Positions 1,101 to 46,187 of a stretch of DNA of 64,000 bases are shown piece after piece. The DNA is taken from IMG/VR virus record IMGVR_UViG_3300023179_004149, positions 186,001 through 250,000 of that record. One strand, given 5' to 3'. The position numbers and the translations under genes were made by a program. The notes below the pieces were generated by a model. That model searched no databases, was not told where the DNA came from, and saw only the letters and a list, made by a program, of their open reading frames with translations. Each line of letters begins with the position of its first letter. Position 1 is the stretch's first letter.

Positions 1101-2756
1101 ATGGGTGCATTATTAGAATCAGGAAAAGTTGGTAACGTGTCGTTAAACCACTTAAAAAGAGTTCGTCAGGACGTTATCAATAGATGGGACAGCTTAGGCC
1201 TCTTAGAAGGTTTAACTGGTCATAGAAAAGAAAACATCGCTCAACTTTATGAAAACCAAGCTTCTTGGATGTTGAACGAATCAACAACATTGGGTACAGA
1301 AGGTTCATTTGAAACTGTTGTATTTCCAATCGTGAGGAGAGTATTCTCAAAATTATTAGCAAACGAAATCGTTTCAGTACAAGCATTAAACTTACCTATT
1401 GGTAAATTGTTCTACTTCGTACCAAAAATTGGTGAATCACGTTTCGATTCAACAAACGCACCGAAATCATTAGCTAACGCTAATATTAACTATGGTGCTG
1501 GTACAGGTTCAACTGGTGGTAACAACATGATGAGTATGGTATCTGGTAACGACTTCTCAGATAACAACAACCTTTATGATGGTTTCTATGGTGATGACGC
1601 TTTCTTTGATAAATCAAAAGGTAAATATACTACTTTAACAGCCTCAACTTACGGTTCGGGTTATACATTTAACTCAACATCAACATCTGGTTTTGCGGTT
1701 GCTAACCAAACTGGTATCACATCTGGTAATACAGGTATTGTAAAATTAACTTTCACAATGGGTAACGGTTTTGATTGGGAAAACATTGAAGACTTTATGT
1801 CATCTATGGTAATCACATCATCTAACCCTTCAGTTTCAGCGGTTGATTTCTATTTCCCAAGTCAGAAATACGGTAATCAGTTAATGGACTCAAACGGTGT
1901 GGTTTATGTTGCAATCCCTAACACAGGTTCAACAACAATAGCAATAACTGGTTTAACAGCTACAGCTAAGCAGTACGCTTCTCTTGAATTAGCTGATGAT
2001 ATGGGCGAAGTTTCTTTCGAACTTAAGTCTGTAACTGTATCAGTTATTGAAAGAAAATTAAGAGCGCAGTGGTCACCAGAACTTGCTCAGGACGTTAGTG
2101 CGTTCCATAACATTGACGCTGAGGCTGAATTAACAGCTTTATTGTCAGAGCAGGTAGCTGCTGAAATCGACAGGGAAATCCTTAAAGACCTTAGAAGAGG
2201 TGCTGCATGGAGATTATACTGGGATTATAAAGGTGCAACAGGTCGTGGTATCGATATTAACGCAGCTGGTGCTTTCTATACTCAGAAAGAATGGAACCAA
2301 ACATTGGTTACAGCAATCAACCAGGTTTCTGCACAGATCCACAAAGCAACATTAAGAGGTGGTGCAAACTTCATCGTATGTTCTGCTGAGGTATCAGCTA
2401 TCTTTGATGACTTGGAATATTTCCACGTATCAAACGCCGCTCCAGATCAGGACAAGTATAACATGGGTATTGAGAGAGTGGGTGCTTTAGCTGGTCGTTA
2501 CCAGGTTTACCGTGACCCTTACTTCCCTGCTGACACGATCCTTATCGGTCACAAAGGTACTTCATTGTTAGATACTGGTTACATCTACGCTCCATATGTA
2601 CCATTGCAATTAACACCAACAATGTATAATCCGTTCACTTTCGCCCCTGTGAAAGGTATCATGACTCGTTACGCTAAGAAGATGGTTAACAACCGTTTCT
2701 ATGGTGTGGTTAAGGTACAGAACGTTGTAACATTCGGTATCGATTCATTCAGATAA
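1101..2756 (+). CDS. gp23: Major capsid protein, T4 gp23-like
   Basis: Motifs FPIVRRVF, VSVQALNLPIGKLFY, RKLRAQWSPELAQD, AEIDREI, YAPYVPLQ, GIMTRYA. The N-terminal region ends MLNE|ST at residue 60, a plausible prohead-protease site. Confidence 0.97.
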   Translation: MGALLESGKVGNVSLNHLKRVRQDVINRWDSLGLLEGLTGHRKENIAQLYENQASWMLNESTTLGTEGSFETVVFPIVRRVFSKLLANEIVSVQALNLPIGKLFYFVPKIGESRFDSTNAPKSLANANINYGAGTGSTGGNNMMSMVSGNDFSDNNNLYDGFYGDDAFFDKSKGKYTTLTASTYGSGYTFNSTSTSGFAVANQTGITSGNTGIVKLTFTMGNGFDWENIEDFMSSMVITSSNPSVSAVDFYFPSQKYGNQLMDSNGVVYVAIPNTGSTTIAITGLTATAKQYASLELADDMGEVSFELKSVTVSVIERKLRAQWSPELAQDVSAFHNIDAEAELTALLSEQVAAEIDREILKDLRRGAAWRLYWDYKGATGRGIDINAAGAFYTQKEWNQTLVTAINQVSAQIHKATLRGGANFIVCSAEVSAIFDDLEYFHVSNAAPDQDKYNMGIERVGALAGRYQVYRDPYFPADTILIGHKGTSLLDTGYIYAPYVPLQLTPTMYNPFTFAPVKGIMTRYAKKMVNNRFYGVVKVQNVVTFGIDSFR

Positions 2757-8380: not shown

Positions 8381-8474
8381 TGTCTAGTTTTACTATTCGT
8401 TTATATAAAGGTGTTGAGTATCTTGTTAATTTATCTTTATTAACAAGATACCCAGCAAAAATAAACGCTTAATT

Positions 8475-29859: not shown

Positions 29860-30840
29860 ATGAAAAAAGTAAATTTAAACGAACAAATCGTTAGAATGAG
29901 ATCCATTATGGGGCTCAATGAATCAAAAAGAACCGAAGCAGATGCCCAGAGAATACTCGCTGGCGTTGAAAACGCTGAGACTATAGTAAAACAATTCGCC
30001 CAGGGTGACCAATCAAAAGACCAAAAGAATATACCCATTATGGCATCCATATATAAAAATTTTAACTATACCGATGTTAAAAATATAGTGGATGTTATGA
30101 ACGATTATAATGATTTGGTTACTAAAAATAGGGTTAAACCTATTCAAATAGCCAAGGGTGTTTTATCAATAGGGGATAAATCCTTTAATGATTTTATTAG
30201 GTTTTCTGAATATATTCACGGTGAAAAGAACAAATATGCGGCACCTCAAAAAGGTTCAAGTGTTGATGCTGATTTCATCTCTAATAAAAAACCTATGTGG
30301 TCGGGTAATAATATCGATATCTATGAAGGTGATGAGGTTGGTAAATGTATCGCATACACCATGGGTGGTTTAACTGGTAGAGGTTATAGCTTCTGTATCG
30401 GTCAACCAGGTAATACCGTGTATCAATCTTACAGAGACACCAAAGTTTCATCATTCTATTTCGTGGTGGATAAAAACCACTTTAAAACCAATGAAGACGG
30501 TAGTGTAAATCTTGATGATCCATTACACATTGTGGTGTTCGATAATACACAACACGGTATAGAACTTACAGATGCTAACAACACAACTGGTAAAATCGCT
30601 GAACCATTTGGTACCAATTCAGATATATATGTTGATTATCTTAAAAATAAAGGCGTTCCAGTTGATCAACTCATCAATAAACCAAAAACCGATCAGGAAA
30701 GAAAAGAAGATGAATTGTTAGGTAGACCCAATCCAAGCCTTGAATGGTTTGTAAAATTACCGATTGATTTAAAATCAAAATACATAGGTAGAGGACACCA
30801 ATTAACAAACGATCAATTCGATTATCTCATAGGTAAATAA
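29860..30840 (+). CDS. Leader-tagged hypothetical protein
   Basis: Starts MKKVNLNEQIVRMRSIMGLNE. Contains GRGYSFCIG...YFVVD. Confidence 0.75.
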   Translation: MKKVNLNEQIVRMRSIMGLNESKRTEADAQRILAGVENAETIVKQFAQGDQSKDQKNIPIMASIYKNFNYTDVKNIVDVMNDYNDLVTKNRVKPIQIAKGVLSIGDKSFNDFIRFSEYIHGEKNKYAAPQKGSSVDADFISNKKPMWSGNNIDIYEGDEVGKCIAYTMGGLTGRGYSFCIGQPGNTVYQSYRDTKVSSFYFVVDKNHFKTNEDGSVNLDDPLHIVVFDNTQHGIELTDANNTTGKIAEPFGTNSDIYVDYLKNKGVPVDQLINKPKTDQERKEDELLGRPNPSLEWFVKLPIDLKSKYIGRGHQLTNDQFDYLIGK

Positions 30841-30841
30841 T

Positions 30842-32372: not shown

Positions 32373-32578
32373 CTTTCCATATAACCCGTCATTTGATCGG
32401 TTGCACCCAAATCTGTACCAGTCCTAATCTCAGCGTCTTCGCCGAATGAATCCCTGAATCCTGGGGGTATTGAGGTGGCACCAACACCAACGGTGTTATC
32501 ACCACCCTCAAGCACATCTGACCATTGTTTGATTTTTTTGATTTCCTGTTCCAATGATATTTTTTCTGTTTTTTTCAT
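32369..32578 (-). CDS. Small protein with leader-like N-terminus
   Basis: SLEQEIKKIKQW...LE, TATTTATT upstream. Confidence 0.6.
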   Translation of the reverse strand: MKKTEKISLEQEIKKIKQWSDVLEGGDNTVGVGATSIPPGFRDSFGEDAEIRTGTDLGATDQMTGYMES

Positions 32579-32646
32579 TTTTTTTGTGTTTTTAAAATAA
32601 ATAGTTGAACTTTGGTCATGAGCATATATTCTTATGATTTGGTAAT

Positions 32647-32670
32647 GGGATAGGGGATAGGGGGCTTGGG
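32647..32670 (+). other. Intergenic G-quadruplex-forming motif
   Basis: GGG-ATA-GGGG-ATA-GGGGG-CTT-GGG in an AT-rich divergent intergenic region. Confidence 0.5.
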
Positions 32671-32691
32671 TATTAAGAACGTGTAAATTTT

Positions 32692-32720
32692 AAAAAAGCG
32701 GGTAAATTACCCGCTTTTTT
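32692..32720. terminator. Terminator-like hairpin
   Basis: aaaaaagcgggt-aaatt-acccgcttttt. Confidence 0.65.
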
Positions 32721-32748
32721 TATATATTTATATGTATAAAACATATAA

Positions 32749-35382
32749 ATGACAATGAAAATTGTAATTACTGAAGAGCAACTTCAAAAATTATCCGAAT
32801 ATATGATTTCAAATAAATTATTTGAGGGTGAGTTTAGGTTAGATACGACCAACACCACACAAATAGATCATATATTTAATATATTTAAACAATCATACGA
32901 GAAATCTACTGGTGGTTCCTGGGATAAATCTAAATTTTTATCAAGAGCTAGTGATTGGTTATTTTTTGGTGATATGGATGGTTTTATTGCGGTAAGACCT
33001 CAGAAATCAGGTTTATACAAGTTAGTGGGTGTGGCTGGCTCACCAAAAAGCATATTAAGCGCTTTGAGTGAAATCGAATCCAAAAACATACCAGTATGGG
33101 GTATGGTTACTCAAAACATACAGACAATGCTCCAAAAGAAAGGATTTATAACACCAACACCCGAGCAATTACAACTACTATACAAATCCATACCATCATC
33201 CGTATTCGGCGGAGCCGAAACTCAGCAGAATCCTGACGGTAGCTTAACGTTAAAATATAACGATGTTGGTGACGCAACAAAATTCTTTGTTGGTAACGAA
33301 ATGTATTTCAATGCAATGAAGACCATGTTTGGGGATAAATTCAACCTGGATGAGGCAAGATCAAACCCAGAAAAAAATCCGAGAGTTACATTCGGGATGT
33401 TCATGGATAATCTGGTAAATAAATATACATATGAAAATATATTTGTGTCATTTAGAAATGATTTACATGTAACAGATGTAAATGTTAATAACAAATACAG
33501 CACCCCAACTGGTGTTTATTCATACCCGCTTATTTCATATTTCAGAAACAAATACGATTTATCCAGGATGGATGAAGGTATGTTCAGAGAAGCATTCCCA
33601 TACCAATCTAAATTACCTTATATGTATTTTATTGTCTTAAAATCACATAACGGTATCCTGGATGAAAACACAACTTTTGAGCAGGTTGTTCCTTACGTTA
33701 AAAAGATAATGGATCTTTATGGTGACATTACACCCGTATATAAAACATGTGAATTATATTTGAATAAAGATTTTAAATCAACATATAATTCTTCCCCTTA
33801 TCATGAAGCACATAACTTTTGGTTATTTCTGTATGAGGTTGCGGCCTATATAACTAAGAATAAAAAACAACATGCGATTAATATTATTTGTACTAAAATA
33901 GGTGTTAATGGCTTTGTTGACTATAAAGGTAACGGATATATCCACCCGTCAGAGCCAAAACAAGCGGTGTTCTTTAGAATTAAACCAATTGCTGATGTTC
34001 TAATTTATAAAACCCAGATAACCAATTCTAATGATAAATTTGAATCATATTTAAAACAATTAAAACCAGGTGTGAAAAATCAGGTGTTGGTGAATAAATT
34101 ATTGGATTTTAACTTAATCTTCAATTACAATCAAGTTAATAGGATCGTTAATGCTTCAACGGATCAGCTCGATACGGCTTTAAGATTAATAATTAAAGAA
34201 GCTAATAAAATGGATCTGTCTAACTCATATATGGATAGTGTATTTTTCGCTGTTACAGAACCAGGTGGTAAAGATAAATTGGCCCTTGCTTTGCTCGATT
34301 CAAAATTAATCTACCACCATTCAATTGTTACGATGCTGGGACACGTATCGGACGAAAATCTTTTTGCTGAAAAACTATTAGAGAAATCGGAAAGTTTTAA
34401 TAATTACAAAATAGTAAACGAAATATTATTTTATTTAAAAGACCCGATTAAAGGGGCTAAAGATATTTTGGCTAAATTGGATCTTGAATTTGCCAGCGTG
34501 GAAATAATACAAATATTGATCGAACATGGTGGTGATGTATTAGCATATTTAATAACAAATAAAGTTTTTGGTAAAGAAAATTATCACGACTTCATTAATA
34601 CAATTCTTACACGTGTTAAAGATAATCTAAAATACTGTGTGTTCCTAATCAAAAAAGAAAATAAAAATATTAGTAGATTGACCTTAGATACTATTTTCTC
34701 ATGGGTTGACCTACCAACAGATAGAGCTAAATTAATGAAAATAGTTCTACAACTATTAGATTATCAACCAAGGCCAGCTATTTTAAAGTTTATATTAAGT
34801 AATAGTCCAGATTTATACAATGTTTTAAATGCGATCTACACCAAACAAAACGGATTTACCGATGAACAATACGTTATGTTATTTACCTCACAATATCTCA
34901 GCGGTAAAAACTATTTCTTTGTTCTTGATAAATGGCTCGAAAAGCTTAAAACTAAAGAAGGCCTTACTGCCGATGAAATATTCTTTAGTGGAACAATTGG
35001 AAATAAAATACGTGGTTTAAGTGACGAGGAAGGGTATGAGAACGTTAGAACAAAATTAATGGATACATACGTCGAATTGGTTAATAAAGTAATATCAAAA
35101 GTTGATGATCCAGTTTTGGTTTATCAAAAATTATTTAAACTCAATTTTATTTCAGCTGATAAATTATTGATCAAACTCATCACACAAATTAGTCCAGAAA
35201 ACGGAGAAATGTTAGCTAATGATATCCAGGATAAAAAGGGTGCTGATATGTTCAACCCTATTTATGCATTCTCTAATAAACTAACTGATGAATTAAATAA
35301 CGCAAAAACAAATAAAACATACGATATCCTAAAACGCATGGATAATGTGATCGAAGCCTTTTATAACGTAACCAATTTATAA
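32749..35382 (+). CDS. Multi-domain probable head-packaged protein
   Basis: Leader MKIVITEEQLQKLSE...LFE, internal NLDE|ARSNPE, a module ending GFVD.KG.GYIHPSEP.Q.VFF (possibly ART-like), and helical repeats. Confidence 0.7.
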   Translation: MTMKIVITEEQLQKLSEYMISNKLFEGEFRLDTTNTTQIDHIFNIFKQSYEKSTGGSWDKSKFLSRASDWLFFGDMDGFIAVRPQKSGLYKLVGVAGSPKSILSALSEIESKNIPVWGMVTQNIQTMLQKKGFITPTPEQLQLLYKSIPSSVFGGAETQQNPDGSLTLKYNDVGDATKFFVGNEMYFNAMKTMFGDKFNLDEARSNPEKNPRVTFGMFMDNLVNKYTYENIFVSFRNDLHVTDVNVNNKYSTPTGVYSYPLISYFRNKYDLSRMDEGMFREAFPYQSKLPYMYFIVLKSHNGILDENTTFEQVVPYVKKIMDLYGDITPVYKTCELYLNKDFKSTYNSSPYHEAHNFWLFLYEVAAYITKNKKQHAINIICTKIGVNGFVDYKGNGYIHPSEPKQAVFFRIKPIADVLIYKTQITNSNDKFESYLKQLKPGVKNQVLVNKLLDFNLIFNYNQVNRIVNASTDQLDTALRLIIKEANKMDLSNSYMDSVFFAVTEPGGKDKLALALLDSKLIYHHSIVTMLGHVSDENLFAEKLLEKSESFNNYKIVNEILFYLKDPIKGAKDILAKLDLEFASVEIIQILIEHGGDVLAYLITNKVFGKENYHDFINTILTRVKDNLKYCVFLIKKENKNISRLTLDTIFSWVDLPTDRAKLMKIVLQLLDYQPRPAILKFILSNSPDLYNVLNAIYTKQNGFTDEQYVMLFTSQYLSGKNYFFVLDKWLEKLKTKEGLTADEIFFSGTIGNKIRGLSDEEGYENVRTKLMDTYVELVNKVISKVDDPVLVYQKLFKLNFISADKLLIKLITQISPENGEMLANDIQDKKGADMFNPIYAFSNKLTDELNNAKTNKTYDILKRMDNVIEAFYNVTNL

Positions 35383-35383
35383 C

Positions 35384-36502
35384 ATGAAACTAAACGAACA
35401 AATATCAAGAATGAAATCCATCATGGGTATCAAAGAATCTATACGTGCTTCCGAAGCAACAAACCAAATAGATTCAATCTTAACCGTATTACACGGTAAG
35501 AGAAACCTGGCATTCATTACATTTGGTGATCTAAATCCAACAAATAAACAAACGGTGACTAAACTAATCAACTCAGACCCCTCTTTAAACTCAATACACG
35601 TCAAAAAGAATCCTCTTATGGGATTTGTGATATATAGAGAGGGACACGAGAAAGAAGCCCAGGAATTGGCTAATTTGGCCAATAGATACGGTGGTTATTT
35701 ATCCGTGGATGCAACCAAAGAAGATTCAATCAGAATCGGACAATTGCTCGATTACGATCCTCAAGATATTCAAGATTATATAAACAAACATTATGATGAA
35801 TATGGCGTGAATATTCGCACTGGTAACTTGTTTGAATTTGATTCACCCGATCAAAACCCATCCGCTATTTCAGTTCTGGGGTTGGATGAGGTGGCTAAAA
35901 CAGTGAGTGATTTACCTGCCGATACTGGCCTATACCACCAAACAAATATTAATATTGGAGACCAGTTTGTGTTATACTCAGCATCAGAAGATAAAGTCTA
36001 TGGTGGGATTAATATATATAATACAGATGAAGACCCTAATGTTTATATGGTGTCACGTGTGTCAGCCAACGAAAGTTTCGGCCCCCTATTGTATGATATG
36101 ATGTTATCATACGTATATCCTAAACCACTCATTCCAGATCGCAATACGATATCAAAAGATGCAATAAAGGTTTGGACATATTATTTCAATAATAGAAATG
36201 ATATAAAAAAGGAACCAATAGATATTGATGATCAATTATATAGCACAATCTATCCCTACGAACGAGAAATCGATCCCGATGTTCTAAAAGATCTACTTTT
36301 TGAACCCGAATACAAAGATACAATACACGAGTTGGATATCTATAATTCCAAATATATCGGAAAACCTTTGAATATACAACCGCTGTTAATTAACGCCAAT
36401 AAACAACTAAAATTAAAAAATGTAAACCTAAACGACTTAATCAGTAGATCGGGTAAGCATTACGACCAATCAAAAGGTGTACCCAGTGATTACGACATAT
36501 GA
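35384..36502 (+). CDS. Leader-tagged two-module protein, C-terminal GNAT-like
   Basis: MKLNEQISRMKSIMGIKE, internal LFE/LDE, VSRVSANESFGPLLYD...SKDAIKVW. Confidence 0.7.
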   Translation: MKLNEQISRMKSIMGIKESIRASEATNQIDSILTVLHGKRNLAFITFGDLNPTNKQTVTKLINSDPSLNSIHVKKNPLMGFVIYREGHEKEAQELANLANRYGGYLSVDATKEDSIRIGQLLDYDPQDIQDYINKHYDEYGVNIRTGNLFEFDSPDQNPSAISVLGLDEVAKTVSDLPADTGLYHQTNINIGDQFVLYSASEDKVYGGINIYNTDEDPNVYMVSRVSANESFGPLLYDMMLSYVYPKPLIPDRNTISKDAIKVWTYYFNNRNDIKKEPIDIDDQLYSTIYPYEREIDPDVLKDLLFEPEYKDTIHELDIYNSKYIGKPLNIQPLLINANKQLKLKNVNLNDLISRSGKHYDQSKGVPSDYDI

Positions 36503-36900
36503 AACTTAACGAACAAATAACAAAAATGAAATCTATGATGGGACTAAAAGAAAATATCCAATACTATGGAATTGTTAACCCAGAAGATAGAAATTGGCTC
36601 AGAATCAAAGGAAGAAAATCCTATAGCGGCGGCGAACTCTCACCAATCATCATAGATGGCGTTATGGTCGGTGGAATACATATAGATAAAATGTCGGGCG
36701 TGTGGGGTATCGATTATCTCGAAATTAAACCAGAATTCCAAAACAAAGGTACCCTAAGAAAAATCATATACGATCAAGCTGACGATGGTGTGGTTAAATT
36801 CATTAGCGCAAGCGATGAACTCCAACAAAAATTAACTACCTATGGTGAAGTAACAACCGATCCAAACACGGATATAACAACATTAACTATTACAAAATGA
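36499..36900 (+). CDS. Leader-tagged GNAT-like acetyltransferase
   Basis: MKLNEQITKMKSMMGLKE, IDYLEIKPEFQNKG (motif A-like). Confidence 0.7.
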   Translation: MKLNEQITKMKSMMGLKENIQYYGIVNPEDRNWLRIKGRKSYSGGELSPIIIDGVMVGGIHIDKMSGVWGIDYLEIKPEFQNKGTLRKIIYDQADDGVVKFISASDELQQKLTTYGEVTTDPNTDITTLTITK

Positions 36901-37517
36901 ACCTTAACGAACAATTAAATATAATGAAAACCATGATGGGTATCAAAGAAGATGATATAATCATCGATAAAAATCCCAACATTATGCACTTTTTTCATGG
37001 TGGTGACCTGGATGAGGTTAAACAAGACCTCATCCAAAGATCCGACAGACAAGTTCATGGCCCTGGCCTTTATCTTACAACAAATTGGGAGAGAGCAAAG
37101 AAATACGCCAAAGGCGGTAGAAAAATGTATATTGTGTCTGTGGAGAAAGGCAATAATCTCGATGATAAAGACATCGATATGGTTGCGCTCACACAATTCC
37201 TTAAACAAAACCTTTCACCCAAAAAAGTACAATATGTGCTCGATAGAGCCAATACCAGATTGCACGGTGGTAAAATACCAGCTTATATCGTTAATAACAT
37301 ACTTATAGATAGCGGATTCCTCAAATCAAATTTTTCATTAATGTGGAAAACATTCCTTATAGGTGTCGGCATTGATTACGTTCTTGATGAAACAGCTTTC
37401 GGCGGCGAAGGACAAATGATGGTATTATACAACACCAATAAAATAAAAAATATCAGGAGAATCATGCCAAATGATAAACTTCCAACATACGATTTAAGAC
37501 CATACAATGAAACTTAA
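36897..37517 (+). CDS. Leader-tagged ADP-ribosyltransferase-fold protein
   Basis: MNLNEQLNIMKTMMGIKE, FFHGG...GPGLYLTT...AKKYA. Confidence 0.7.
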   Translation: MNLNEQLNIMKTMMGIKEDDIIIDKNPNIMHFFHGGDLDEVKQDLIQRSDRQVHGPGLYLTTNWERAKKYAKGGRKMYIVSVEKGNNLDDKDIDMVALTQFLKQNLSPKKVQYVLDRANTRLHGGKIPAYIVNNILIDSGFLKSNFSLMWKTFLIGVGIDYVLDETAFGGEGQMMVLYNTNKIKNIRRIMPNDKLPTYDLRPYNET

Positions 37518-38409
37518 CGAACAACTGAATAAAATGAAATCAATGATGGGATTACAAACCATCAACGAATACGTCACACAACATGATGTATATCTTCGTG
37601 ACTATTTTAATATGACCGAAGAGCAAAAGAAAAACTCTTTGCCCTTTATGTACCCATGGTTGTTCAGCGATTTTCTTGAAGAAAAAGATATCGAATTTAA
37701 AAGACCAACAAAAGCTTATTTTGATGCTTACGGTGAAGAACAACCTGGTGATGAATATGAGGATTATGAAATCGTTGATATCTTACAACACAAAGATAAA
37801 CCAGTGTTCGACGCTTTCGCCGATTATCTTTTTGATAAAGTGGAACGCAATGAACTTTCGGTTGACGATACAGAATATCCAGCCTGGTCATATATAACAC
37901 ACCCAAAATTGATAACAAACCAATGGTTAATACACTTCACCGAAGAACCATGGAAAATAGCTCGTGAAGGATTCACACGTGGTGTATCTGAATTAGACAA
38001 GTTGCACCTAACAACAAGACTCGGCGAATTCGATAAAAAATACGGCGGCTATAACTTCGCATTTAGAGCCGATATATATAAAAGATACGCAAGAAGAGGT
38101 TATATGCACGGAGGCGGATATAAATACGGAAACGAAGCAGTTATGTTCATTGGATCTGGTATAGAAGTCATACACCACGGCGATGAAGAACCACAAGTAA
38201 TCTTCTGGGGTAAAAAAGCAAGAAATATCGTGCCGATAACACAGGAATACGGCGACGACTATGCGGTACACAATATTAAAAAAGGCGGTATTGTTTACAA
38301 AAGCCAAGACCTGGACGACGTGGTTTCTTGGGTTATGAGAAACTATGATAGATATAAAAATGTGATTCAATACGAACCCACAAGAACAAAAGAACCTGAC
38401 AAATATTAA
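37507..38409 (+). CDS. Leader-tagged protein, possible ART fold
   Basis: MKLNEQLNKMKSMMGL..INE, WLIHFT...EGF...GYNFAF...EEPQVIF. Confidence 0.6.
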   Translation: MKLNEQLNKMKSMMGLQTINEYVTQHDVYLRDYFNMTEEQKKNSLPFMYPWLFSDFLEEKDIEFKRPTKAYFDAYGEEQPGDEYEDYEIVDILQHKDKPVFDAFADYLFDKVERNELSVDDTEYPAWSYITHPKLITNQWLIHFTEEPWKIAREGFTRGVSELDKLHLTTRLGEFDKKYGGYNFAFRADIYKRYARRGYMHGGGYKYGNEAVMFIGSGIEVIHHGDEEPQVIFWGKKARNIVPITQEYGDDYAVHNIKKGGIVYKSQDLDDVVSWVMRNYDRYKNVIQYEPTRTKEPDKY

Positions 38410-38410
38410 T

Positions 38411-38995
38411 ATGAACCTTAACGAACAAATCTCCAGGATAAAAGAAATGATGGACATAAACGAAGCACTTCAACCCATCACCGTTTATCACGGATCCAAT
38501 ACCAAAATCACAAACTTCGTGGATGACTTTGTGGGCGGAGAACAAGCCAACGACCTGGAAGGGCCTGGCATATACTTCACAACAATAGCGGAAAATGCCG
38601 AATATTTTGGAACATACGTACATGAAGTAACAATAACACCAAGAAAACTACTAACCGAAAGCCCAAATGGGGGCACCACCATCGAATTAACAAAATTAGC
38701 CAAAATGGCACCCGATTGGGAAAGCACAGCTCAAAATTGGGACGAAAACCCACAGATAGGTTTAAATAAAGCTATCAGAGACTTTATTTCATATAACCAC
38801 AACCAAAAAGATAGGTTCCTACAGGTATGGATAGACTTCTATAAAAATGACCCAGTGGATTATGTTAGAAACTGTGTTAAACTCGGATATGATGGTATCG
38901 TTGTTAATAGAGATGTTATAGACGGAAAACGACTTAAACACTATATCATATATAACCCAAGCATAATACAAATAAAAAAAGTAACCCAGGTATAA
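38411..38995 (+). CDS. Leader-tagged ADP-ribosyltransferase-fold protein (ART-PolyVal-like)
   Basis: MNLNEQISRIKEMMDINE, VYHGS...GPGIYFTT..ENAEYF...GYDGIVV...YIIYNP..IQI. Confidence 0.8.
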   Translation: MNLNEQISRIKEMMDINEALQPITVYHGSNTKITNFVDDFVGGEQANDLEGPGIYFTTIAENAEYFGTYVHEVTITPRKLLTESPNGGTTIELTKLAKMAPDWESTAQNWDENPQIGLNKAIRDFISYNHNQKDRFLQVWIDFYKNDPVDYVRNCVKLGYDGIVVNRDVIDGKRLKHYIIYNPSIIQIKKVTQV

Positions 38996-39004
38996 CCCTG
39001 GGTT
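38983..39004. terminator. Bidirectional terminator
   Basis: aacccagg-tataa-cctgggtt between convergent genes. Confidence 0.75.
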
Positions 39005-39016
39005 TTATTTTTAATT

Positions 39017-41602
39017 TTACTCTAATGCGTTTAATACTTTTTCCTTTATTGTTTGAACACGATTATGATTCGATTTCGCCATCTTTTCAACAATCAAAGC
39101 CCTCAACCGATCAGCCACCTTAGGGTCCTTCAATCTATATACCTTTAATAACGAATCGTACTTACCCAATAAAGATTGATCCTCATCCGATATACCAATC
39201 AAATTATAAAACACATACCCATTAACCAATTGTAAAACCCTATCCTTACCAATTTGATCCTTTAGTTTGATGAACCGTTGAACAATCTCATCATCTGATT
39301 CCTTCTTAACATTTAATTCTTTATATAATGGTTCCAATTCAGCGCCAACCAAATCAAAATACATCTCCCTCAACTCAGCTGGAAACTTATTAACAACAAA
39401 CGGCGATATGGTCTTAACTATCGTATCGGTTAACACATGGACAATATGTTTGATAACATCAAACCCCTTGTTTTTGTTAAATAAACCAAATAACACATCG
39501 TATCGACCATGATTTATCAATTCCCTGACATAAATGTCTGTGTTCATGTTATTAATCGTTCTACCATGATACAAGACACCAAAGGCATCCTCAACAAGAA
39601 CATCCAAAGATTGTGACCAATATGATTCCATCCCCTTCAACACACCCCTTTCATTACGATACTTTAACTCATACTCCGTTAACCACCCAATCACAAAATT
39701 CTTAAACTTCTGATTGAACACCCCATAATAAGGCCCAGTAAAATGACAATAAATACCAGAGGCAAATCTACCAAGAGGATCCTTAATATTCCAATCACCC
39801 TCCTTTATTAAATAAAAAACAAAACTATTATCCCTTATCATATTGCCAACACCCGCACCATAACCTTCACCACCATCATCAATAGTTGATTTGATCATCG
39901 TTTGCTTTATATCCTTAATACCAGAAAGATTCTCACATGTGCTAAAATGATCACTATCTCCCATATTTGCAATATCATGCGAATGCCTGGATATAACAGC
40001 ATACATCTTACCTTCACCACCAGCCCTGGTCATCGAATCCAAATAACTCGTGTATCTTTTCAATAAACCAACATCATACTTTTGCAATAACTTGGTTAAT
40101 TTAACCTCCTGGTTACTCTTCTCATCCTTCACCTTGTTACCGTCAAAATCAACCAACACAAAACCATTATCGGCAATAACACGATCAATATCATGCCTTA
40201 ACTTATCACTAATATTAACATCCAAATTTAAAGTCGGTGTTTTCCTGGTCGGCGTAATCATCTTCCCAGTATCGAGATCATAATATAAACGATATACATT
40301 CTTACCAAATAAATTATCCATATTAGCATCAAAACGCTTTTGATAGGCCCTGGCTTGCTTGGATAAATTCAACTCAATGGCCTCACCCAACCACATCACC
40401 CCCCTCATGCGGGAAACCTCTTCATTTAATTTATTTAACGTCTCTTCTGCAAATTCTAATGACTCTTTCTCATTATCATCAAGCTCTCTATTAATACCAC
40501 TTATAACTTTTCGTATTATATCCTCTTCCCACCTAAACGCATACAACACATACGATAACAAACTCTCACCACGCCTAATAATTCTCTTATCATATATTAT
40601 TTTCATTAAGTTATAATTAATTATCATCTTAATGTTTTTATCCGTTATGTTATTGGCCATATCAGGGTCTTCAATTAATTTGGTATGTAATGATTGCAAA
40701 TAAACTTTCTTTAACTCATCTCGCAACCCATCAAAATCAAAAAACCAATTATAATACCTCTTAACCAAAACCTTGCTACGTTCCAAAGGCATCGAGTTTA
40801 ACTCATCCATCTGTTTCTTATCATAAATTACATCATTTGATAATAACCTGTTTTCTAATGAGTCGTGTGTTCCAATAACACCTTTCTTATTTATATTAAT
40901 AAATAAGGTGTTTATATCAACAGACTTCATATCACCATCAATCTTATTAAGATCATAGATAACCGAACCATGTAACGTATTATCCCAATCCCAAACACCT
41001 GAAACATTAACACCATTATAGCCATTCCACTCCATAATCCTGGTGGAAAATGAAGCCGAACTACTGGCTTGCGTTTTATTATACATCGAATTAAAATCAC
41101 TCGCGGCTTGTTTTAACATATTGATAAACTCACGATACTTTGGAACCTTTAAACCCAAATAACTTAAATTATTAACAACAACCAAATACCGCTTGCTTAT
41201 ATCGCCATGCCCATATAAAAAACTATAAAATATATCATTCAACTCCTTCAATGTGTTAAATAACCACTTACCTTGTTCATTGCTCTTTACTCGATATAAA
41301 TTTTTATAGAAATCCATATTAACCCTATAAACACTATCACCAACCTGAATCAACCCAGACATATCCTTAAAAGCAGATCCATATTTTTTATCATAATCAG
41401 CTTTATCCCTTAACTTATAAGTTGAAAAATACATACCCGAACCAAAGTGACCCGTGCCCCTACCTTGCATTCTCCATATGTTATCAGAACCATACGGTTT
41501 TAAATTAGATAAATTAACACTACCCGAATGATAGTTGTAATCGGCCTCAATTAATAAAACCATTTTTTTTATTTGTTGTAACTCAGAAAGTAACTTATCC
41601 AT
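39017..41602 (-). CDS. Fused two-cassette leader-tagged polyprotein, N-module ART-like
   Basis: N-leader LLSELQQIKKMV.LIE, YHSG...GHFGSGMYFST, and a second internal leader LNKLNEEVSRMRGVMWLGE at 40391-40438. Confidence 0.75.
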   Translation of the reverse strand: MDKLLSELQQIKKMVLLIEADYNYHSGSVNLSNLKPYGSDNIWRMQGRGTGHFGSGMYFSTYKLRDKADYDKKYGSAFKDMSGLIQVGDSVYRVNMDFYKNLYRVKSNEQGKWLFNTLKELNDIFYSFLYGHGDISKRYLVVVNNLSYLGLKVPKYREFINMLKQAASDFNSMYNKTQASSSASFSTRIMEWNGYNGVNVSGVWDWDNTLHGSVIYDLNKIDGDMKSVDINTLFININKKGVIGTHDSLENRLLSNDVIYDKKQMDELNSMPLERSKVLVKRYYNWFFDFDGLRDELKKVYLQSLHTKLIEDPDMANNITDKNIKMIINYNLMKIIYDKRIIRRGESLLSYVLYAFRWEEDIIRKVISGINRELDDNEKESLEFAEETLNKLNEEVSRMRGVMWLGEAIELNLSKQARAYQKRFDANMDNLFGKNVYRLYYDLDTGKMITPTRKTPTLNLDVNISDKLRHDIDRVIADNGFVLVDFDGNKVKDEKSNQEVKLTKLLQKYDVGLLKRYTSYLDSMTRAGGEGKMYAVISRHSHDIANMGDSDHFSTCENLSGIKDIKQTMIKSTIDDGGEGYGAGVGNMIRDNSFVFYLIKEGDWNIKDPLGRFASGIYCHFTGPYYGVFNQKFKNFVIGWLTEYELKYRNERGVLKGMESYWSQSLDVLVEDAFGVLYHGRTINNMNTDIYVRELINHGRYDVLFGLFNKNKGFDVIKHIVHVLTDTIVKTISPFVVNKFPAELREMYFDLVGAELEPLYKELNVKKESDDEIVQRFIKLKDQIGKDRVLQLVNGYVFYNLIGISDEDQSLLGKYDSLLKVYRLKDPKVADRLRALIVEKMAKSNHNRVQTIKEKVLNALE

Positions 41603-41605
41603 ACA

Positions 41606-42850
41606 CTATTTTAATTTATCAAACTCTCTATCATAAGAAGATTTTTCATCCAACGGATTCTTTAGATGATTGGTTACATAATCCTCAAATCGGAAAAAAG
41701 CACCATTAATTTTATTCAAAAGATCTTCTGAAATATCTGGCGTTATTTTTAAAGGTTCATTAACCTCATTCAAACCCATAACCTTTTTTATTTGATTAAG
41801 CCCCTCATCTAACATATCTGAACTAATACCTAAAGTATTTAAATACTTATTAAAATCCATATCATACACTTCATACCATTTAATGTTGTTACTCAAATAT
41901 AAAGAATAACTATCTGGTAAATAGGTCATCAAAAACCTAGCATCATCAATATCCATGTTAAAATCCATTATAACATACACATACCCCAAACCAGCATAAT
42001 CTTCCCAATAATTCTCACTACCAACTTGTGCAAAACACCAATTACTATAACAACCCAATTGCTGCATAGCCTCATAATCATTAACCTTGATTACCAGAAC
42101 ATCGTTTTTATCATATACCAAATCAGCATCAAGATTCGGCAATAAATCCAAAACATGTTTACGACCCGTTTCAGCGCCATCACCAATATAACTCATGGTC
42201 TTACTCAAATGATCAAAACCCGCAACAATATCTTTAAAACTCCTACCACTACGAAATAGTTTAGGCAACATCTCATCGTGTTTTTTCTTAGGTAAAGCCT
42301 GTAATATTTTATTAATAACCCTCAACCCCTCATACACTTTTTTAAAATTATATGAAATAAACTGTTGGTAATTCGGGTCGGCTGTATCAATGTTATATAT
42401 ATATTCTTTAATTGGTTTCATCATATTACGCTTAATAATATCTGATAATTTACCCCAACTTTTAACCAAATAACTCCTTTCCTTTAACATCTCATATAAA
42501 GACATTACATGAAATCTATTATCCTGGGTTTCATATTTGTAGTCGGTTAAATTACCTGGAACAGGAAATAATTGTTTATCATACACTCTTACTAAATCGT
42601 AAAAATCCGCAACAATATCCATATTCCTCTCAGTATATTTACTCTGGTCAGATTCAAACCTATTCATCTGATAATAAAAATCAGTAACCAACTTCGTAAA
42701 ATTATTACCGTTTGTAAGATCAACAATAGCTTCCTTGACACGAGGCTCTAACTTACCCGAATTAAAATAAACTTTATCGGCTAATTGAACATTCTCATTC
42801 AAACCCATCATTACCCTCATACGGAAAACTTGCTCGTTTAATTTATTCAT
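41606..42850 (-). CDS. Leader-tagged hypothetical protein
   Basis: MNKLNEQVFRMRVMMGLNE, LGCYSNWCF module, internal LDEGLNQIKKVMGLNE near the C-terminus. Confidence 0.75.
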   Translation of the reverse strand: MNKLNEQVFRMRVMMGLNENVQLADKVYFNSGKLEPRVKEAIVDLTNGNNFTKLVTDFYYQMNRFESDQSKYTERNMDIVADFYDLVRVYDKQLFPVPGNLTDYKYETQDNRFHVMSLYEMLKERSYLVKSWGKLSDIIKRNMMKPIKEYIYNIDTADPNYQQFISYNFKKVYEGLRVINKILQALPKKKHDEMLPKLFRSGRSFKDIVAGFDHLSKTMSYIGDGAETGRKHVLDLLPNLDADLVYDKNDVLVIKVNDYEAMQQLGCYSNWCFAQVGSENYWEDYAGLGYVYVIMDFNMDIDDARFLMTYLPDSYSLYLSNNIKWYEVYDMDFNKYLNTLGISSDMLDEGLNQIKKVMGLNEVNEPLKITPDISEDLLNKINGAFFRFEDYVTNHLKNPLDEKSSYDREFDKLK

Positions 42851-43453
42851 TTATACTCCACTAAAACTTAATTGGTTATTATCATTTATATATAAATCAA
42901 CTGACCCCATATCACGTGATGCTTTCATTAATATATTCTCGTCCTCATCATCATAACCCCTATCAAAAAAACCAGCACCGTGACCATTACGTGTCAACCA
43001 AAAGTCATGACCAAGTTGTTCAGCACCAAACTCATTAATCGCCCTATGAATTAAATCCTCACCACATAACTGAATGAATTTCTTAATACCTATATAAGCA
43101 TCAATTAACGAATCTGACTCAATATCTTCACGACTGAATGATACAATACCCTTATTATTCAACTGCGATGTTAATCTAATTAATTTATCCAATTCGGTAT
43201 CATCCTCATCCTCATCATCGTCGTCATAAACACTATCATCACCTTGTTCATCTCTCAAAGATTCCTCCTCAGTCCATAATGCCGCTTCAATATACCCCAT
43301 CAATATCTTATTTATAATATCGGTAGATATATCAGATTCGTCTAATACACTACCATCATCCTGAATATCCTTGGCAAATTGATACCTACCCGAATTTTCA
43401 GATATACCCATTATCGCCCTCATGCGGGACACTTGTTCATTTAATTTATTCAT
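42851..43453 (-). CDS. Leader-tagged hypothetical protein (GHDFWLTRNGHGAGF motif)
   Basis: Start reassigned to MNKLNEQVSRMRAIMGISE at 43453. Confidence 0.75.
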   Translation of the reverse strand: MNKLNEQVSRMRAIMGISENSGRYQFAKDIQDDGSVLDESDISTDIINKILMGYIEAALWTEEESLRDEQGDDSVYDDDDEDEDDTELDKLIRLTSQLNNKGIVSFSREDIESDSLIDAYIGIKKFIQLCGEDLIHRAINEFGAEQLGHDFWLTRNGHGAGFFDRGYDDEDENILMKASRDMGSVDLYINDNNQLSFSGV

Positions 43454-43466
43454 AACGATATCAATT

Positions 43467-44081
43467 TTATTTTGTTTCATAATTATCTGGTACCAGGTTA
43501 CTAAGATGCTCCACAAACGTATCAAACTCGAAAAATTTGGGATTGTATTTATATGGTACCTCTTTACCATCTGGACGTAAAACAACAACTTTATAATCAC
43601 TAAATTTACTATGAGTATCTCTAAATCCAGATATAATATCCACAATATAGGAATAATGATTCGTATCAGTTAATATAATTCTGAATTTGATCCTATCTGG
43701 TGTATTCTCGAATATATTAACCTTCACCACAACAGCTTTAACGTCACCAATATTTATTGTTTTACCCACATATGAATTAATTAGATCCTCTGAAAATATA
43801 CCAGATACATACCAGTGCTTATTCCCTGATTTATCAAGAATTGGTTTAAAATCACCAAACTCCAAATCTATAGGTTCACCAGAAACATCAACATCCGCAA
43901 CATCCGATTTTTTAAAATTACCAAATCTGCCAACTTTATCATCTGGCTTTAACTTCTTCCTGGTAGTGTCAAGATTCTTGGTCTTATTCCAATACCAATC
44001 AGAATCATCCCAAGATTCACTTAACCCCATCATCCGCCTGATGTTTTGAATCTCCTCATTTAATGTTTGTTTCTGTTTCAT
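43467..44081 (-). CDS. Leader-tagged hypothetical protein
   Basis: MKQKQTLNEEIQNIRRMMGLSE. Confidence 0.75.
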   Translation of the reverse strand: MKQKQTLNEEIQNIRRMMGLSESWDDSDWYWNKTKNLDTTRKKLKPDDKVGRFGNFKKSDVADVDVSGEPIDLEFGDFKPILDKSGNKHWYVSGIFSEDLINSYVGKTINIGDVKAVVVKVNIFENTPDRIKFRIILTDTNHYSYIVDIISGFRDTHSKFSDYKVVVLRPDGKEVPYKYNPKFFEFDTFVEHLSNLVPDNYETK

Positions 44082-44082
44082 A

Positions 44083-44190
44083 TTACTTTAATTCACTTAT
44101 GATTCTTTGATTTTCCCAGATACGTTTCAAATTCTTTAATACGTTCTTTCTAATCTTATTCTTTTTTTGCTTGGGTTTTGCTTTTGCCAT
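44083..44190 (-). CDS. Small basic peptide (35 aa)
   Basis: MAKAKPKQKKNKIRKNVLKNLKRIWENQRIISELK, TATTTATG upstream, stop 1 nt before the next ATG. Confidence 0.55.
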   Translation of the reverse strand: MAKAKPKQKKNKIRKNVLKNLKRIWENQRIISELK

Positions 44191-44235
44191 AATATAACTT
44201 TTACTACTCATAAATATAAAAAAATCCACAATAAA

Positions 44236-44267
44236 TTTGCCTATGCACCAAAATATTCGTATATTTG
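44236..44267 (+). promoter_or_regulatory. Bacteroidota-type promoter
   Basis: TTTG-N20-TATATTTG, ATG at 44275. Confidence 0.75.
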
Positions 44268-44274
44268 CTCCGTT

Positions 44275-45627
44275 ATGGCACGGTACATCGAAATAGAAAG
44301 AAAAGAAGCGGAAAAAGAAAAGGCTTACCAAGAAGCCCTGGATCGCCACGCACTGGAACGTAAAGTAAACAGAGCTAAAACAGCACAACTAGTTGAATGG
44401 ATCTGCTCAAACAAACTCAAACCAACCAACTACCTCTATACTTCCAATAACTTCGATCTTTGGAGCACCATGGAAGTAACCGCCACATTATGCCGCAAAT
44501 CCGATAAATTCAAAAAAATCGCAACTCATATAGCAGAATGGGCCCCTAACTTCTATGAAAATAGGGATAACATACTAGCCCTCAGAGGTATCTCAGAAGT
44601 TTATTCAGAAAGACTCAGAAACATAGAAGATTGGGAACCAAAAAAACTTAATCACAAATCTATACTCATCGAAATCCTAAACCACCTATTCACCAATTAC
44701 CAATCACCCCAATTCCTCATTAACGGATTTATCAACAATAACCATGAGTCAATGCTGCTCTTTATACACCTGGGACAAGGTAAGTCCATGAAAACATGGC
44801 CATTTATCCCAGAATTTAATATACCCAAAAAAGCACTACACCACCTCTACACCACACCAAACTATTGCACATATAACGAAGCTTTCAGAAGAGCACAAAT
44901 TATTCACCTCGGCGGAGATGATAAACTCTTCCGACTCCTTATGTCAACAAAACTCGAACACCACACCAATAATATTAATAAACACAGAGCCAAAGACGAA
45001 CCATTCTGGGAATCGGTTATCAAATTCTTTATCGAACACCAAATGATGAACCCAGATAAAGTAGGTGAAATTATCGACTATATCTACGACCAAAAATTTG
45101 CCCTTAAAAGAAAACCAGGACCTAACGGTACAACGGTGAACGAACCAGATCAACCCAACTTTACCATGAAAGGTAGAACACCAATGTCACTGATCCAACA
45201 GTCAGATGATTGGCACTACTTTGTCGCCATGAATAAAAAACGTGAGGAAGACCCTAAAGAATGGGAACCAATCGATCTACCTGATTGGGAATGGAAAGAA
45301 GGTGAAGAAAATAACTTCGCTAAAATGAGATACAACATCACCCAGCTCACAAAAACCAAAGAACTTATCGCAGAAGGTAATAAAATGCACCACTGTGTCG
45401 CCACTTATGCCAGCTCATGTATTAAGAAATGGTGCTCCATCTTCTCGTTCCGTGTAACCAACCACACCCAGGGCAAATTCGATGAACCAGAAGTAACCCT
45501 GGAAATCAGATCTAAAACCATAGTACAGGCCAGAGGTAAATACAACAGAACACCTCACCCACACTATATGCAAATGATCAAATCATGGGCCGATATTAAC
45601 GGAGTGAAATTCTCAAATTATATGTAA
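44275..45627 (+). CDS. PcfJ-like domain protein
   Basis: C-terminal L..EG.KMHHCVATY...IFSFR...TLEI....IVQARGKYN pattern. Family name recalled from memory. Confidence 0.8.
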   Translation: MARYIEIERKEAEKEKAYQEALDRHALERKVNRAKTAQLVEWICSNKLKPTNYLYTSNNFDLWSTMEVTATLCRKSDKFKKIATHIAEWAPNFYENRDNILALRGISEVYSERLRNIEDWEPKKLNHKSILIEILNHLFTNYQSPQFLINGFINNNHESMLLFIHLGQGKSMKTWPFIPEFNIPKKALHHLYTTPNYCTYNEAFRRAQIIHLGGDDKLFRLLMSTKLEHHTNNINKHRAKDEPFWESVIKFFIEHQMMNPDKVGEIIDYIYDQKFALKRKPGPNGTTVNEPDQPNFTMKGRTPMSLIQQSDDWHYFVAMNKKREEDPKEWEPIDLPDWEWKEGEENNFAKMRYNITQLTKTKELIAEGNKMHHCVATYASSCIKKWCSIFSFRVTNHTQGKFDEPEVTLEIRSKTIVQARGKYNRTPHPHYMQMIKSWADINGVKFSNYM

Positions 45628-45653
45628 AAATGAACCTATTTATAATAAAAAAT

Positions 45654-46187
45654 ATGGTACTTACAGAACAAATAAATAGGATTAAAGAAATGATGGGATT
45701 AGATCCCAAAAAACGATTTGAGTATAAACCCATCACATATGAAGAATTTGATGACGCACTATCAGATATCTCCACATTAAACCTGGAAGACGATCAACTG
45801 GGTATACCTGAATTTAATCAGAATACCGATAATTTTTTATTACGAATCGATGACATCGACCTCTATATAAAAAATAGACAACAGTTACCAGAAAGTGGCC
45901 CCTATGAATTATTAATTGATAATAACGATGGCGATACCATAGGTTTCATTCGCGGAACCAAATTTAATAACATCCTTTCATTTAATCTCGTATATATTGC
46001 ACCAGAAGAAAGAGGTAATGGCATCGGTACCAGTATCTACCAATACTTTTTGAACCACGGTTATATAATGAAGACCGATAAGGAAATTAGTGATTCCACT
46101 CATTCCATATATACTAACCTCGCAAAATCTGAATATACGCCCATTATGTTCGCCGATCATAGAGTGGGACTGATTAAATCATCATAA
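45654..46187 (+). CDS. Leader-tagged GNAT-like acetyltransferase
   Basis: MVLTEQINRIKEMMGL, LVYIAPEERGNGIGTSIY (motif A), TATTTATA upstream. Confidence 0.8.
   Translation: MVLTEQINRIKEMMGLDPKKRFEYKPITYEEFDDALSDISTLNLEDDQLGIPEFNQNTDNFLLRIDDIDLYIKNRQQLPESGPYELLIDNNDGDTIGFIRGTKFNNILSFNLVYIAPEERGNGIGTSIYQYFLNHGYIMKTDKEISDSTHSIYTNLAKSEYTPIMFADHRVGLIKSS

Follow-up and report, generated by a model that had tools for sequence, protein, structure and literature searches.

The DNA analyzed here, called the window throughout, is a 64,000-nucleotide stretch (bases 186001-250000) of the 320,934-bp IMG/VR record IMGVR_UViG_3300023179_004149 (rated complete; G+C 34.5%), the genome of a T4-like jumbo phage of 321 kb. 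The record comes from a lake-water assembly, and fragments have also been found in freshwater metagenomes from eight studies. Our subject is a 16-kb cluster of this window (29860-46187), in which at least ten proteins start with a common leader peptide, and particularly the three open reading frames (ORFs) of the cluster with domains that resemble ADP-ribosyltransferases (ARTs): o36897, o38411, and the N-terminal module (N-module) of an ORF of 861 amino acids (aa). All three ORFs exist at the positions at which an initial annotation of the window had placed them. Table 1 includes their coordinates, together with those of the other features discussed below.

The three ART-like domains

The shared motif pattern was searched for throughout the 320,934-bp genome, in its 1660 stop-to-stop ORFs with a length of 50 aa or more. 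Among these, the regular expression H[GSN]-x(12-45)-G.G.Y[FLIM].[ST] matches exactly three, o36897, o38411, and the 861-aa ORF; in 200 composition-preserving shuffles, the mean number of matches was 0.05 and the maximum was 1. The pattern, which the initial annotation had pointed out in these same ORFs and which can be read directly from their translations, is therefore confirmed beyond chance (three found against 0.05 expected). In o36897, it consists of FHGG (H34), GPGLYLTT (Y59), KKYA, and GIDY (D160), with an additional E171; in o38411, of YHGS (H27), GPGIYFTT (Y55), and GYDGI (D161), with H177; and in the N-module, of NYHSG (H25), GSGMYFST (Y58), and GYNGV (N196), with D207 and H211. The order is common to all three: the His in strand 1, G-x-G-x-Y in strand 2, a helical insert, G-[YI]-[DN]-G, and a terminal hydrophobic strand.

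Judged by its profile scores, o38411 is a bona fide ART-PolyVal domain. It reaches 39.1 bits with the Pfam model ART-PolyVal (PF18760; gathering threshold 31.2), covering profile positions 5-134 of 140, and matches PHROG 25279 with an E-value of 4.5e-29; with DUF3990 (PF13151; cut-off 32.2), it gives a sub-threshold 15.9 bits over the N-terminal half. Its relatives are present in 15 viral contigs at 38-70% identity. The ART-PolyVal layout described by Iyer et al. (2017, PMC5512222) places a His in strand 1, a Tyr in strand 2, and an Asp in strand 5, and this triad is present in both o38411 (H27/Y55/D161) and o36897 (H34/Y59/D160). It is important to note that equating the Asp of GYDG with that of strand 5 is our own assignment. 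A decayed homologue of o38411 was also observed in a related phage, on a 190-kb viral contig (L002 9981-10285): its frame breaks directly after the leader, the remnant is an 84-aa ORF with neither the helical insert nor GYDG, and the adjoining ORFs bear the same leader.

The scores of o36897 are lower and cover only the N-terminal halves of the Pfam models (DUF3990, 19.6 bits; ART-PolyVal, 16.3 bits, profile positions 1-66). Among its twelve homologues (36-68% identity), H34, G35, G36, R51, G57, Y59, and T62 are fixed, and D160 and Y161 are nearly so. An alignment of the o36897 family with the relatives of o38411 by hhalign gave a probability of 95.9% (E 5.8e-9, 123 columns), which rose to 96.9% after removal of the helical inserts, and a hidden Markov model (HMM) of the o38411 family recovers o36897 from the genome ORF set with an E-value of 1.7e-5. 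The AlphaFold2 (AF2) model built on the homologue alignment (pLDDT 84.6, pTM 0.80) places H34 at the end of strand 1, Y59 in strand 2, and D160 at the opening of the strand that follows the helical insert (aa 95-156). In a Foldseek search against the PDB, this model matches only ART folds: the cyanophage A4 internal ejection protein 9k3a_B (E 8.8e-5), AcrIF11 (6kyf, E 3.1e-4), and further PARP4, cholix toxin, diphtheria toxin, RhsP2, tankyrases, Tpt1, ParT, and MbcT. We therefore regard o36897 as a divergent ART-PolyVal-type ART with the predicted H-Y-D arrangement given by Iyer et al.; by the hhalign result, it is a divergent paralogue of o38411.

At least three modules make up the 861-aa ORF (ART-like, helical, and C-terminal). 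A degenerate leader (aa 1-19, ..LLIE) precedes the N-module, and a full internal copy borders the C-terminal module, dividing it from the ART-like half. The first 390 residues have 35 relatives, in which the module is N-terminal, in the middle, or C-terminal in multidomain proteins; its partners there include PolyA_pol/CCA-adding enzyme, AAA_33 kinase, a nucleoside deoxyribosyltransferase-like domain, and, in the protein P0026, a canonical ART-PolyVal domain. Conservation is very strong at H25, P36-Y37, G51-x-F-G-S-G-x-Y-F-S-T, E191, N-G-V-N-V, D207, and H-G-S-V-I-Y. In the AF2 model of aa 1-390 (pLDDT 81), aa 18-228 form a core rich in strands into which three helices are inserted, and aa 245-390 form a helical-repeat domain apart from it.

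Several searches link this core to ART-PolyVal. In the ESM Atlas, language-model features of aa 1-235 gave ART-PolyVal clusters as the top named matches (0.92; 170-174 shared features; 17 of the 30 matches), and the structure of the same region matched ART-PolyVal and DUF3990 clusters with TM scores of 0.38-0.43. A shape search of the Atlas with the AF2 model ranked DUF3990 and ART-PolyVal clusters immediately behind the family of the module itself (alignments of 124-142 residues, root-mean-square deviation 4.6-5.8), and BFVD gave weak matches (E 0.003-0.3) to annotated ART-PolyVal proteins (E 0.095) and to cyanopodovirus ejection proteins. A narrow N-module alignment compared by hhalign with ART-PolyVal and with the o38411 family gave insignificant probabilities of 1.7-2.8%; after the family was broadened with its divergent members, the probability against the o38411 family was 64% (E 6e-5). 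These divergent members carry L-G-[YF]-[DEQ]-G-[IV]-D-V where the module's own subfamily has N-G-Y-N-G-V-N-V, and the former is the ART-PolyVal motif L-G-Y-D-G-I. H25 and Y58 are invariant wherever they are aligned (120 of 120 and 154 of 154, from 186 domains), and D207 is essentially so, while the Asp position holds N in 140 of the 164 aligned domains, E in 13, D in 6, Q in 4, and S in 1. From these models and alignments, we consider with high confidence that the N-module is a distant ART-PolyVal offshoot whose subfamily has undergone an Asp-to-Asn change. Because the family Asp is replaced (N196), the N-module may not be a standard transferase; it would either transfer by a changed chemistry or bind NAD or ADP-ribose without catalysis. 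A whole-library profile search with its core returned 477 cluster representatives with E-values up to 1e-3, of which 99 reached E<=1e-30, including proteins of 1.4-4.4 thousand aa. The N-module thus founds a large family that has no Pfam model and many of whose members lie inside giant polyvalent proteins.

The initial annotation counted three to four ARTs and named o37507 and the middle of o32749 as weaker candidates. Both are without the pattern and gained no profile support, so the count is three: two certain ART-PolyVal-type domains and a probable one. For o37507, which belongs to a family abundant in phages (278 homologues at 43% identity or more) and has no Pfam model, none of 41 members has a Pfam match, no PDB sequence matches, and hhalign against the three ART profiles gave probabilities of at most 2.2%; the Arr-ms HMM has no match in the phage genome. 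The language-model similarity of o37507 to Arr-ms and PARP/DarT clusters (0.86) is sub-threshold and serves as a lead only. Domains of the o37507 type are fused in other proteins to NUDIX (annotated as ADP-ribose pyrophosphatase; P0079) and to GNAT (P0143), and the NUDIX fusion makes a link of o37507 to NAD or ADP-ribose conceivable; in P0115, such a domain is joined to a small N-terminal segment, the first residues of which resemble the N-terminal part of a 142-aa ORF at genome 20970-21407. For the middle of o32749, we found no Pfam match, no HMM or hhalign signal from any ART profile, and no relatives in viral contigs. The three accepted domains are marked by the pattern as ART-PolyVal-type, one by its Pfam score, one as a homologue with a predicted ART fold, and one as a probable distant relative; together they belong to the ART-PolyVal / DUF3990 / AcrIF11 lineage, that is, to the H-Y-D class on the diphtheria/PARP side of the superfamily.

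Table 1. Position, strand, and supporting evidence of the features of the leader cluster and of the head genes; positions refer to the window unless marked as genome.
Feature	Position	Strand	Residues and evidence
T4 gp23-type major capsid protein	1101..2756	+	Pfam Gp23 256 bits
gp21-type prohead protease, just upstream of the window	genome 183695-185221		Peptidase_S77 31.9 bits, cut-off 27
Leader-bearing ORF, 326 aa, first cluster gene	29860..30840	+	leader HMM 37.0 bits; no Pfam match
Middle (aa 215-425) of 877-aa ORF o32749 (32749-35382), no leader; ART status unsupported	33391..34023	+	no Pfam match
Leader-bearing ORF o35384, 372 aa	35384-36502	+	leader HMM 39.3 bits; counterpart is a module of the L003 1507-aa protein
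Leader-bearing ORF, 133 aa, weakly GNAT-like	36499-36900	+	leader HMM 37.8 bits; counterpart is a module of the L003 1507-aa protein
o36897, 206 aa; leader aa 1-18 MNLNEQLNIMKTMMGIKE, then ART-PolyVal/DUF3990-like domain, helical insert aa ~95-156	36897..37517	+	H34, Y59, D160, E171
o37507, 300 aa, leader-bearing cargo; ART status unsupported	37507..38409	+	no Pfam or PDB match
o38411, 194 aa; leader aa 1-18 MNLNEQISRIKEMMDINE, then ART-PolyVal domain	38411..38995	+	H27, Y55, D161 in GYDG, H177
Unassigned C-terminal module of the 861-aa ORF, aa 411-861	39020-40372	-	no Pfam match
Internal leader copy of the 861-aa ORF, aa 391-410 NKLNEEVSRMRGVMWLGEA	40373..40432	-	leader HMM 33.3 bits, E 2.3e-9; regular expression
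Helical-repeat domain of the 861-aa ORF, aa 245-390	40433..40870	-	AF2
N-module (aa 18-228) of the 861-aa ORF (39017-41602, N-terminus at 41602); probable divergent ART-PolyVal-like domain	40919..41551	-	H25, Y58, N196, D207, H211
Leader-bearing ORF, 414 aa, second leader-like copy near aa 349	41606-42850	-	leader HMM 37.1 bits
Leader-bearing ORF	42851-43453	-	leader HMM 37.8 bits
Leader-bearing ORF	43467-44081	-	leader HMM 32.3 bits
Leader-bearing GNAT acetyltransferase o45630, 185 aa	45630..46187	+	Acetyltransf_1 24.1 bits, cut-off 20.7; leader HMM 36.6 bits; leader without L/I-x-E

The shared leader, its cargo, and neighboring genes

All three ART-type domains sit directly behind the leader, which at the start of the 861-aa ORF is the degenerate version. 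The leader has about 18 residues and the consensus M(K/N)LNEQ(I/L/V)x(R/K)(M/I)(K/R)xxMG(L/I)xE (e.g. MKLNEQISRMKSMMGLxE); genome-wide searches with a regular expression and an HMM identified 11 strong copies (32-39 bits), one of them internal to the 861-aa ORF, and all of them within the cluster. [LI]xE is the direct ending of nine of the 11; in o37507, INE follows three residues downstream, and o45630 lacks the motif. The DNA of the copies differs synonymously, and the peptide is consequently the level at which the leader is conserved; in the AF2 models, it is helical. The parts behind the leader have no mutual kinship, and pairwise BLAST finds little beyond the leader itself. In other phages, homologues of o38411 and o37507 have different, basic amphipathic leaders, which again end in L-x-E right before the domain.

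Weaker leader-like motifs (leader HMM, E 0.003-0.03) occur at or near C-termini: ALNEQIARMKQILRY, LSEHINKMKKLMGLLSD, and LNQIKKVMGLNE, at window 25037-26008 (-), genome 272815-273204 (+), and window 41606-42850 (-), the last at aa ~349. T4 Alt is processed at both ends, and by analogy these motifs could be C-terminal propeptides. A second small locus with leader-like N-termini lies outside the window, at genome 20344-21407 (L023 342-1411). Its 206-aa ORF (MNKLNEALKKIKTMIALIE...) has a kinase-like glycine loop, and its 142-aa ORF (MQELLNEINNIKKWMVILGE...) has the motifs LMHNT, GYYAT, and LGYDVII and a weak match to the ART-PolyVal HMM (E 0.015-0.03), with no Pfam match.

Both o36897 and o38411 are single-domain ORFs whose homologues elsewhere lie within polyvalent proteins. 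For example, a 357-kb viral contig encodes a 1507-aa protein (L003 9221-13744, +) composed of an ART-PolyVal domain related to o38411, a stretch like o35384 (a resemblance judged by eye), GNAT, a CCA-adding enzyme (PolyA_pol), and HAD_SAK, a HAD domain of the 'Swiss Army Knife RNA repair' type; the linkers between these domains contain L-x-E sites. The separate ORFs of the window are therefore counterparts of modules in a classical polyvalent protein.

With respect to the head genes, the Pfam match of the prohead protease falls into two stretches about 1.1 kb apart inside one 603-aa open frame (loci L004 and L005), with the part above the cut-off at genome 184955-185221. Since the match is split within a single open frame, this suggests a large insertion in the protease gene, which could be an intein or an additional domain. 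The neighbors of the capsid gene, at window 4261-10934 (-), encode a ClpB-like ATPase of the double AAA+ type (819 aa) and two large glycosyltransferases with several domains each (717 and 661 aa). The window also encodes a thymidylate synthase; a UvrD-type helicase (22509-24953, +) with an Intein_splicing match between the helicase halves, that is, an intein; and a GAF-PAS-HATPase_c sensor histidine kinase (27815-29575, -) immediately upstream of the leader cluster and encoded on the opposite strand. A gene without the leader lies in the middle of the cluster and encodes a PcfJ-like protein (PF14284, 59 bits; 44275-45627, +). Just upstream of it, the element TATATTTG, of the form TAnnTTTG, resembles the -7 box of Bacteroidota promoters, a weak hint from the sequence that the host may belong to this phylum. 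Kinship with the bS21-encoding Bacteroidetes jumbo phages was considered and rejected, as the phage genome has no S21 gene. The sole further gene of the NAD/ADP-ribose system that we found is a NADAR-domain gene at genome 11848-12279 (-) (locus L024; 165 bits); our profile search identified neither Macro nor NAPRTase (NAD salvage) genes in the phage genome. The phage collection contains no near-identical DNA.

Proposed packaging and its alternatives

Because the phage has genes of the gp21 and gp23 types, the simplest reading of the leader is that of a capsid-targeting propeptide which the prohead protease cuts. The site at which T4 gp21 cuts head proteins follows L/I-X-E, and ten N-terminal residues of IPIII are enough to bring foreign proteins into the T4 head (PMC9026906). 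That phages package ARTs and polyvalent proteins in their heads is, moreover, an established prediction (PMC5512222; PMC9503650). The best structural match of o36897, 9k3a_B, is itself a capsid-internal ejection protein. Reasoning from these analogies, the ARTs are probably packed into the head and injected, and we hold this reading of the leader-tagged cluster with moderate confidence. The notion of a packaged cargo, already put forward in the initial annotation, thereby gains indirect support from a common leader that ends in the T4 prohead-protease motif and from the presence of both head genes.

According to the mechanism that we propose, the leader would carry each protein into the prohead, as the capsid-targeting sequence (CTS) of the T4 internal proteins does; the gp21-type protease would remove it after the terminal L/I-x-E; and the mature enzymes would enter the host with the DNA. 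There, o36897 and o38411 would use NAD+ to ADP-ribosylate different host molecules, with the non-homologous helical inserts setting the target as has been proposed for AcrIF11, and the N-module, of the same fold lineage, would act as a transferase of altered chemistry or as a non-catalytic binder of NAD or ADP-ribose. Three different targets would fit these proteins because the same core carries unrelated helical inserts. Packaging, cleavage, injection, NAD-dependent activity, and targets are all steps that we infer by analogy.

Several observations weigh against this interpretation, both in its assignment of the domains and in the fate that it gives them. At the level of the domains, o36897 remains under both Pfam thresholds (31.2 for ART-PolyVal and 32.2 for DUF3990); the N-module and its 34 homologues have no Pfam match at E<=1, nor have ten tail matches of its profile in the matched part; and no PDB sequence matches the N-module family, in which the replacement of the GYDG Asp by N196 leaves the His/Tyr/Asp triad incomplete. 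The AF2 models cover o36897 and aa 1-390 of the 861-aa ORF, while o38411 was assigned by sequence, and the three PDB fold searches with the 390-residue model barely probed the ART-like core because the helical domain (aa 245-390) took up the lists. At the level of the cluster, some 27 kb with metabolic and replication genes separate it from the head genes, the T4 late-promoter motif TATAAATA shows no enrichment, with 15 occurrences against 12.3 expected, and none of the RNA runs searched for the locus contains it. The leader, in turn, is about twice as long as the T4 CTS; L/I-x-E, the ending by which the two are compared, is a short motif that is common by chance, and o45630 lacks it.

The distance from the head genes and the ordinary frequency of late-promoter motifs would also suit a different course of events, in which the ARTs are real but act as unpackaged, cytoplasmic early or middle proteins for host take-over or anti-defense, like AcrIF11 or T4 ModA/ModB. 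The leader would then have another role, as an assembly or oligomerization helix, a localization signal, or what repeated gene duplication or recombination has left behind at a common 5' cassette. Among the + strand genes, the leader DNA is fairly conserved, as recent duplication or gene conversion would leave it, and AcrIF11, the closest characterized structural relative, is not described as a virion protein in the paper searched. However, whole-gene duplication fails to explain the common leader because the cargo domains are mutually unrelated, and the leader recurs internally at a module boundary. In addition, where other phages have unrelated leaders in front of these domains, the leaders too end in LxE immediately ahead of the domain, and the genome encodes a matching protease. 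For these reasons, we regard a purely cytoplasmic role as rather unlikely. A chance resemblance among unrelated ORFs, for which one could cite that pairwise BLAST of the ORFs finds hardly anything outside the leader, is practically negligible given the excess of pattern matches over the shuffles and the concurring Pfam, hhalign, and fold results; for o36897 and o38411, it is refuted.

The remaining alternatives concern the activity of the domains. Many ART-fold proteins hydrolyze NAD+, and the three domains might accordingly be NAD+ glycohydrolases that drain or alter the NAD+ pool of the host or break down immune signals derived from NAD; the NADAR gene and the NUDIX ADP-ribose pyrophosphatase fused to an o37507-type domain in another genome would agree with such a role. 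Nevertheless, the nearest characterized relatives (AcrIF11, PARPs, cholix, and diphtheria toxin) are transferases acting on macromolecules, three paralogues with differing helical inserts suit different targets better than one small-molecule substrate, and the absence of NAPRTase and Macro domains from the genome also speaks against it, so that this activity appears quite improbable to us. For the N-module, the prevalence of Asn at the GYDG position (140 of 164) raises the possibility of an ART-derived pseudo-enzyme, which would bind NAD+, ADP-ribose, or a host factor, or be structural within the ejected protein mass; the best structural relative of its sister o36897 is a structural ejection protein for which the text searched describes no catalysis. 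This is unlikely in our view, since H25, Y58, the G-S-G-x-Y-F-S-T loop, E191, D207, and H211 are very strongly conserved in the manner of an active site, and PARPs without the catalytic Glu are still mono-transferases. A more far-reaching proposal, which extends the packaging reading and which we consider very doubtful, is that the T4-like jumbo phages of this lineage have split the polyvalent repertoire into separate modules, each loaded into the prohead by a portable leader that also marks where gp21 cuts, even at the junctions of fused modules. The N-module family would in that case be ART-derived, with the Asp-to-Asn change and a non-canonical role, such as binding or sequestering NAD-derived immune signals or modifying nucleic acids, as opposed to ordinary protein ADP-ribosylation. 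If this were true, it would amount to a general and engineerable cargo-loading code for injected effectors.

Comparison with known systems

Proteins of the DUF3990 family are mostly bacterial and often fused to helix-turn-helix domains. Both o36897 and o38411 resemble DUF3990 sub-threshold over the N-terminal half, and in shape DUF3990 clusters are among those closest to the N-module; none of the three domains reaches its cut-off of 32.2 bits. The cyanophage A4 pre-ejectosome protein (9K3A chain B), a podovirus ejection protein of very large size in which the match covers one domain, has an identity of 11-14%, and the paper on this pre-ejectosome, as far as it was searched, describes no ART domain or activity.

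Judging by predicted structure, the closest characterized relative is AcrIF11 (PDB 6KYF), a phage and plasmid ART which ADP-ribosylates Cas8f/Csy1. It depends on His, Tyr (replaced by Phe in one homologue), and Asp/Glu residues, and its authors suggest that a helical region of low conservation recognizes the target. The identity is 12-13%; AcrIF11, in contrast to the domains of the cluster, has no such leader, and a CRISPR protein as target is not indicated here.

In T4, the internal proteins IPI-III and Alt likewise carry a short N-terminal propeptide, ending in L/I-x-E, on unrelated cargo, in a phage with a gp21-type protease and a gp23-type capsid. The T4 CTS has 10 residues, whereas the leader has about 18, and its packaging and cleavage are proposed. 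The comparison with Alt, made in the initial annotation, holds for packaging and fails for kinship. Alt is a packaged ART of the R-S-E clade (Arg, Ser-Thr-Ser, Glu-x-Glu), whereas His and Tyr occupy the first two of these positions in all three domains, and ART-PolyVal and Alt are placed in different ART clades (Iyer et al., PMC5512222); Alt is therefore a packaging analogue of these proteins and not a relative. If the leader works as proposed, the capsid-targeting principle of T4 would extend to uncultured freshwater jumbo phages, and the cassette exchange of injected effectors among such phages would be explained.

The nearest family remains ART-PolyVal (PF18760; Iyer et al. 2017), of which o38411 is a member by Pfam score and whose homologues likewise occur in multidomain polyvalent proteins. 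The window differs in that no single giant polypeptide unites these domains: two are encoded as small ORFs of their own and one forms the start of a two-module ORF, and every one has its own leader; moreover, o36897 and the N-module score too low for the Pfam model, and in the N-module subfamily Asn takes the place of the catalytic Asp. The packaging of ARTs and polyvalent proteins in phage heads has been predicted by comparative genomics and rarely tested, and the locus offers compact, naturally separate single-domain versions of them. As these are leader-tagged, cargo loading and release by the leader, the targets of the ARTs, and the insert as target selector can be tested. The N-module family, with at least 477 sequence clusters, is common in giant phage proteins and absent from Pfam, and it is probably an offshoot of ART-PolyVal. 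Compared with these known systems, what our study adds is modest but concrete: a polyvalent repertoire divided into leader-tagged single ORFs in a T4-like phage, the tie of this arrangement to a gp21-type cleavage motif, and the recognition of a large ART-like family outside Pfam with a changed catalytic position.

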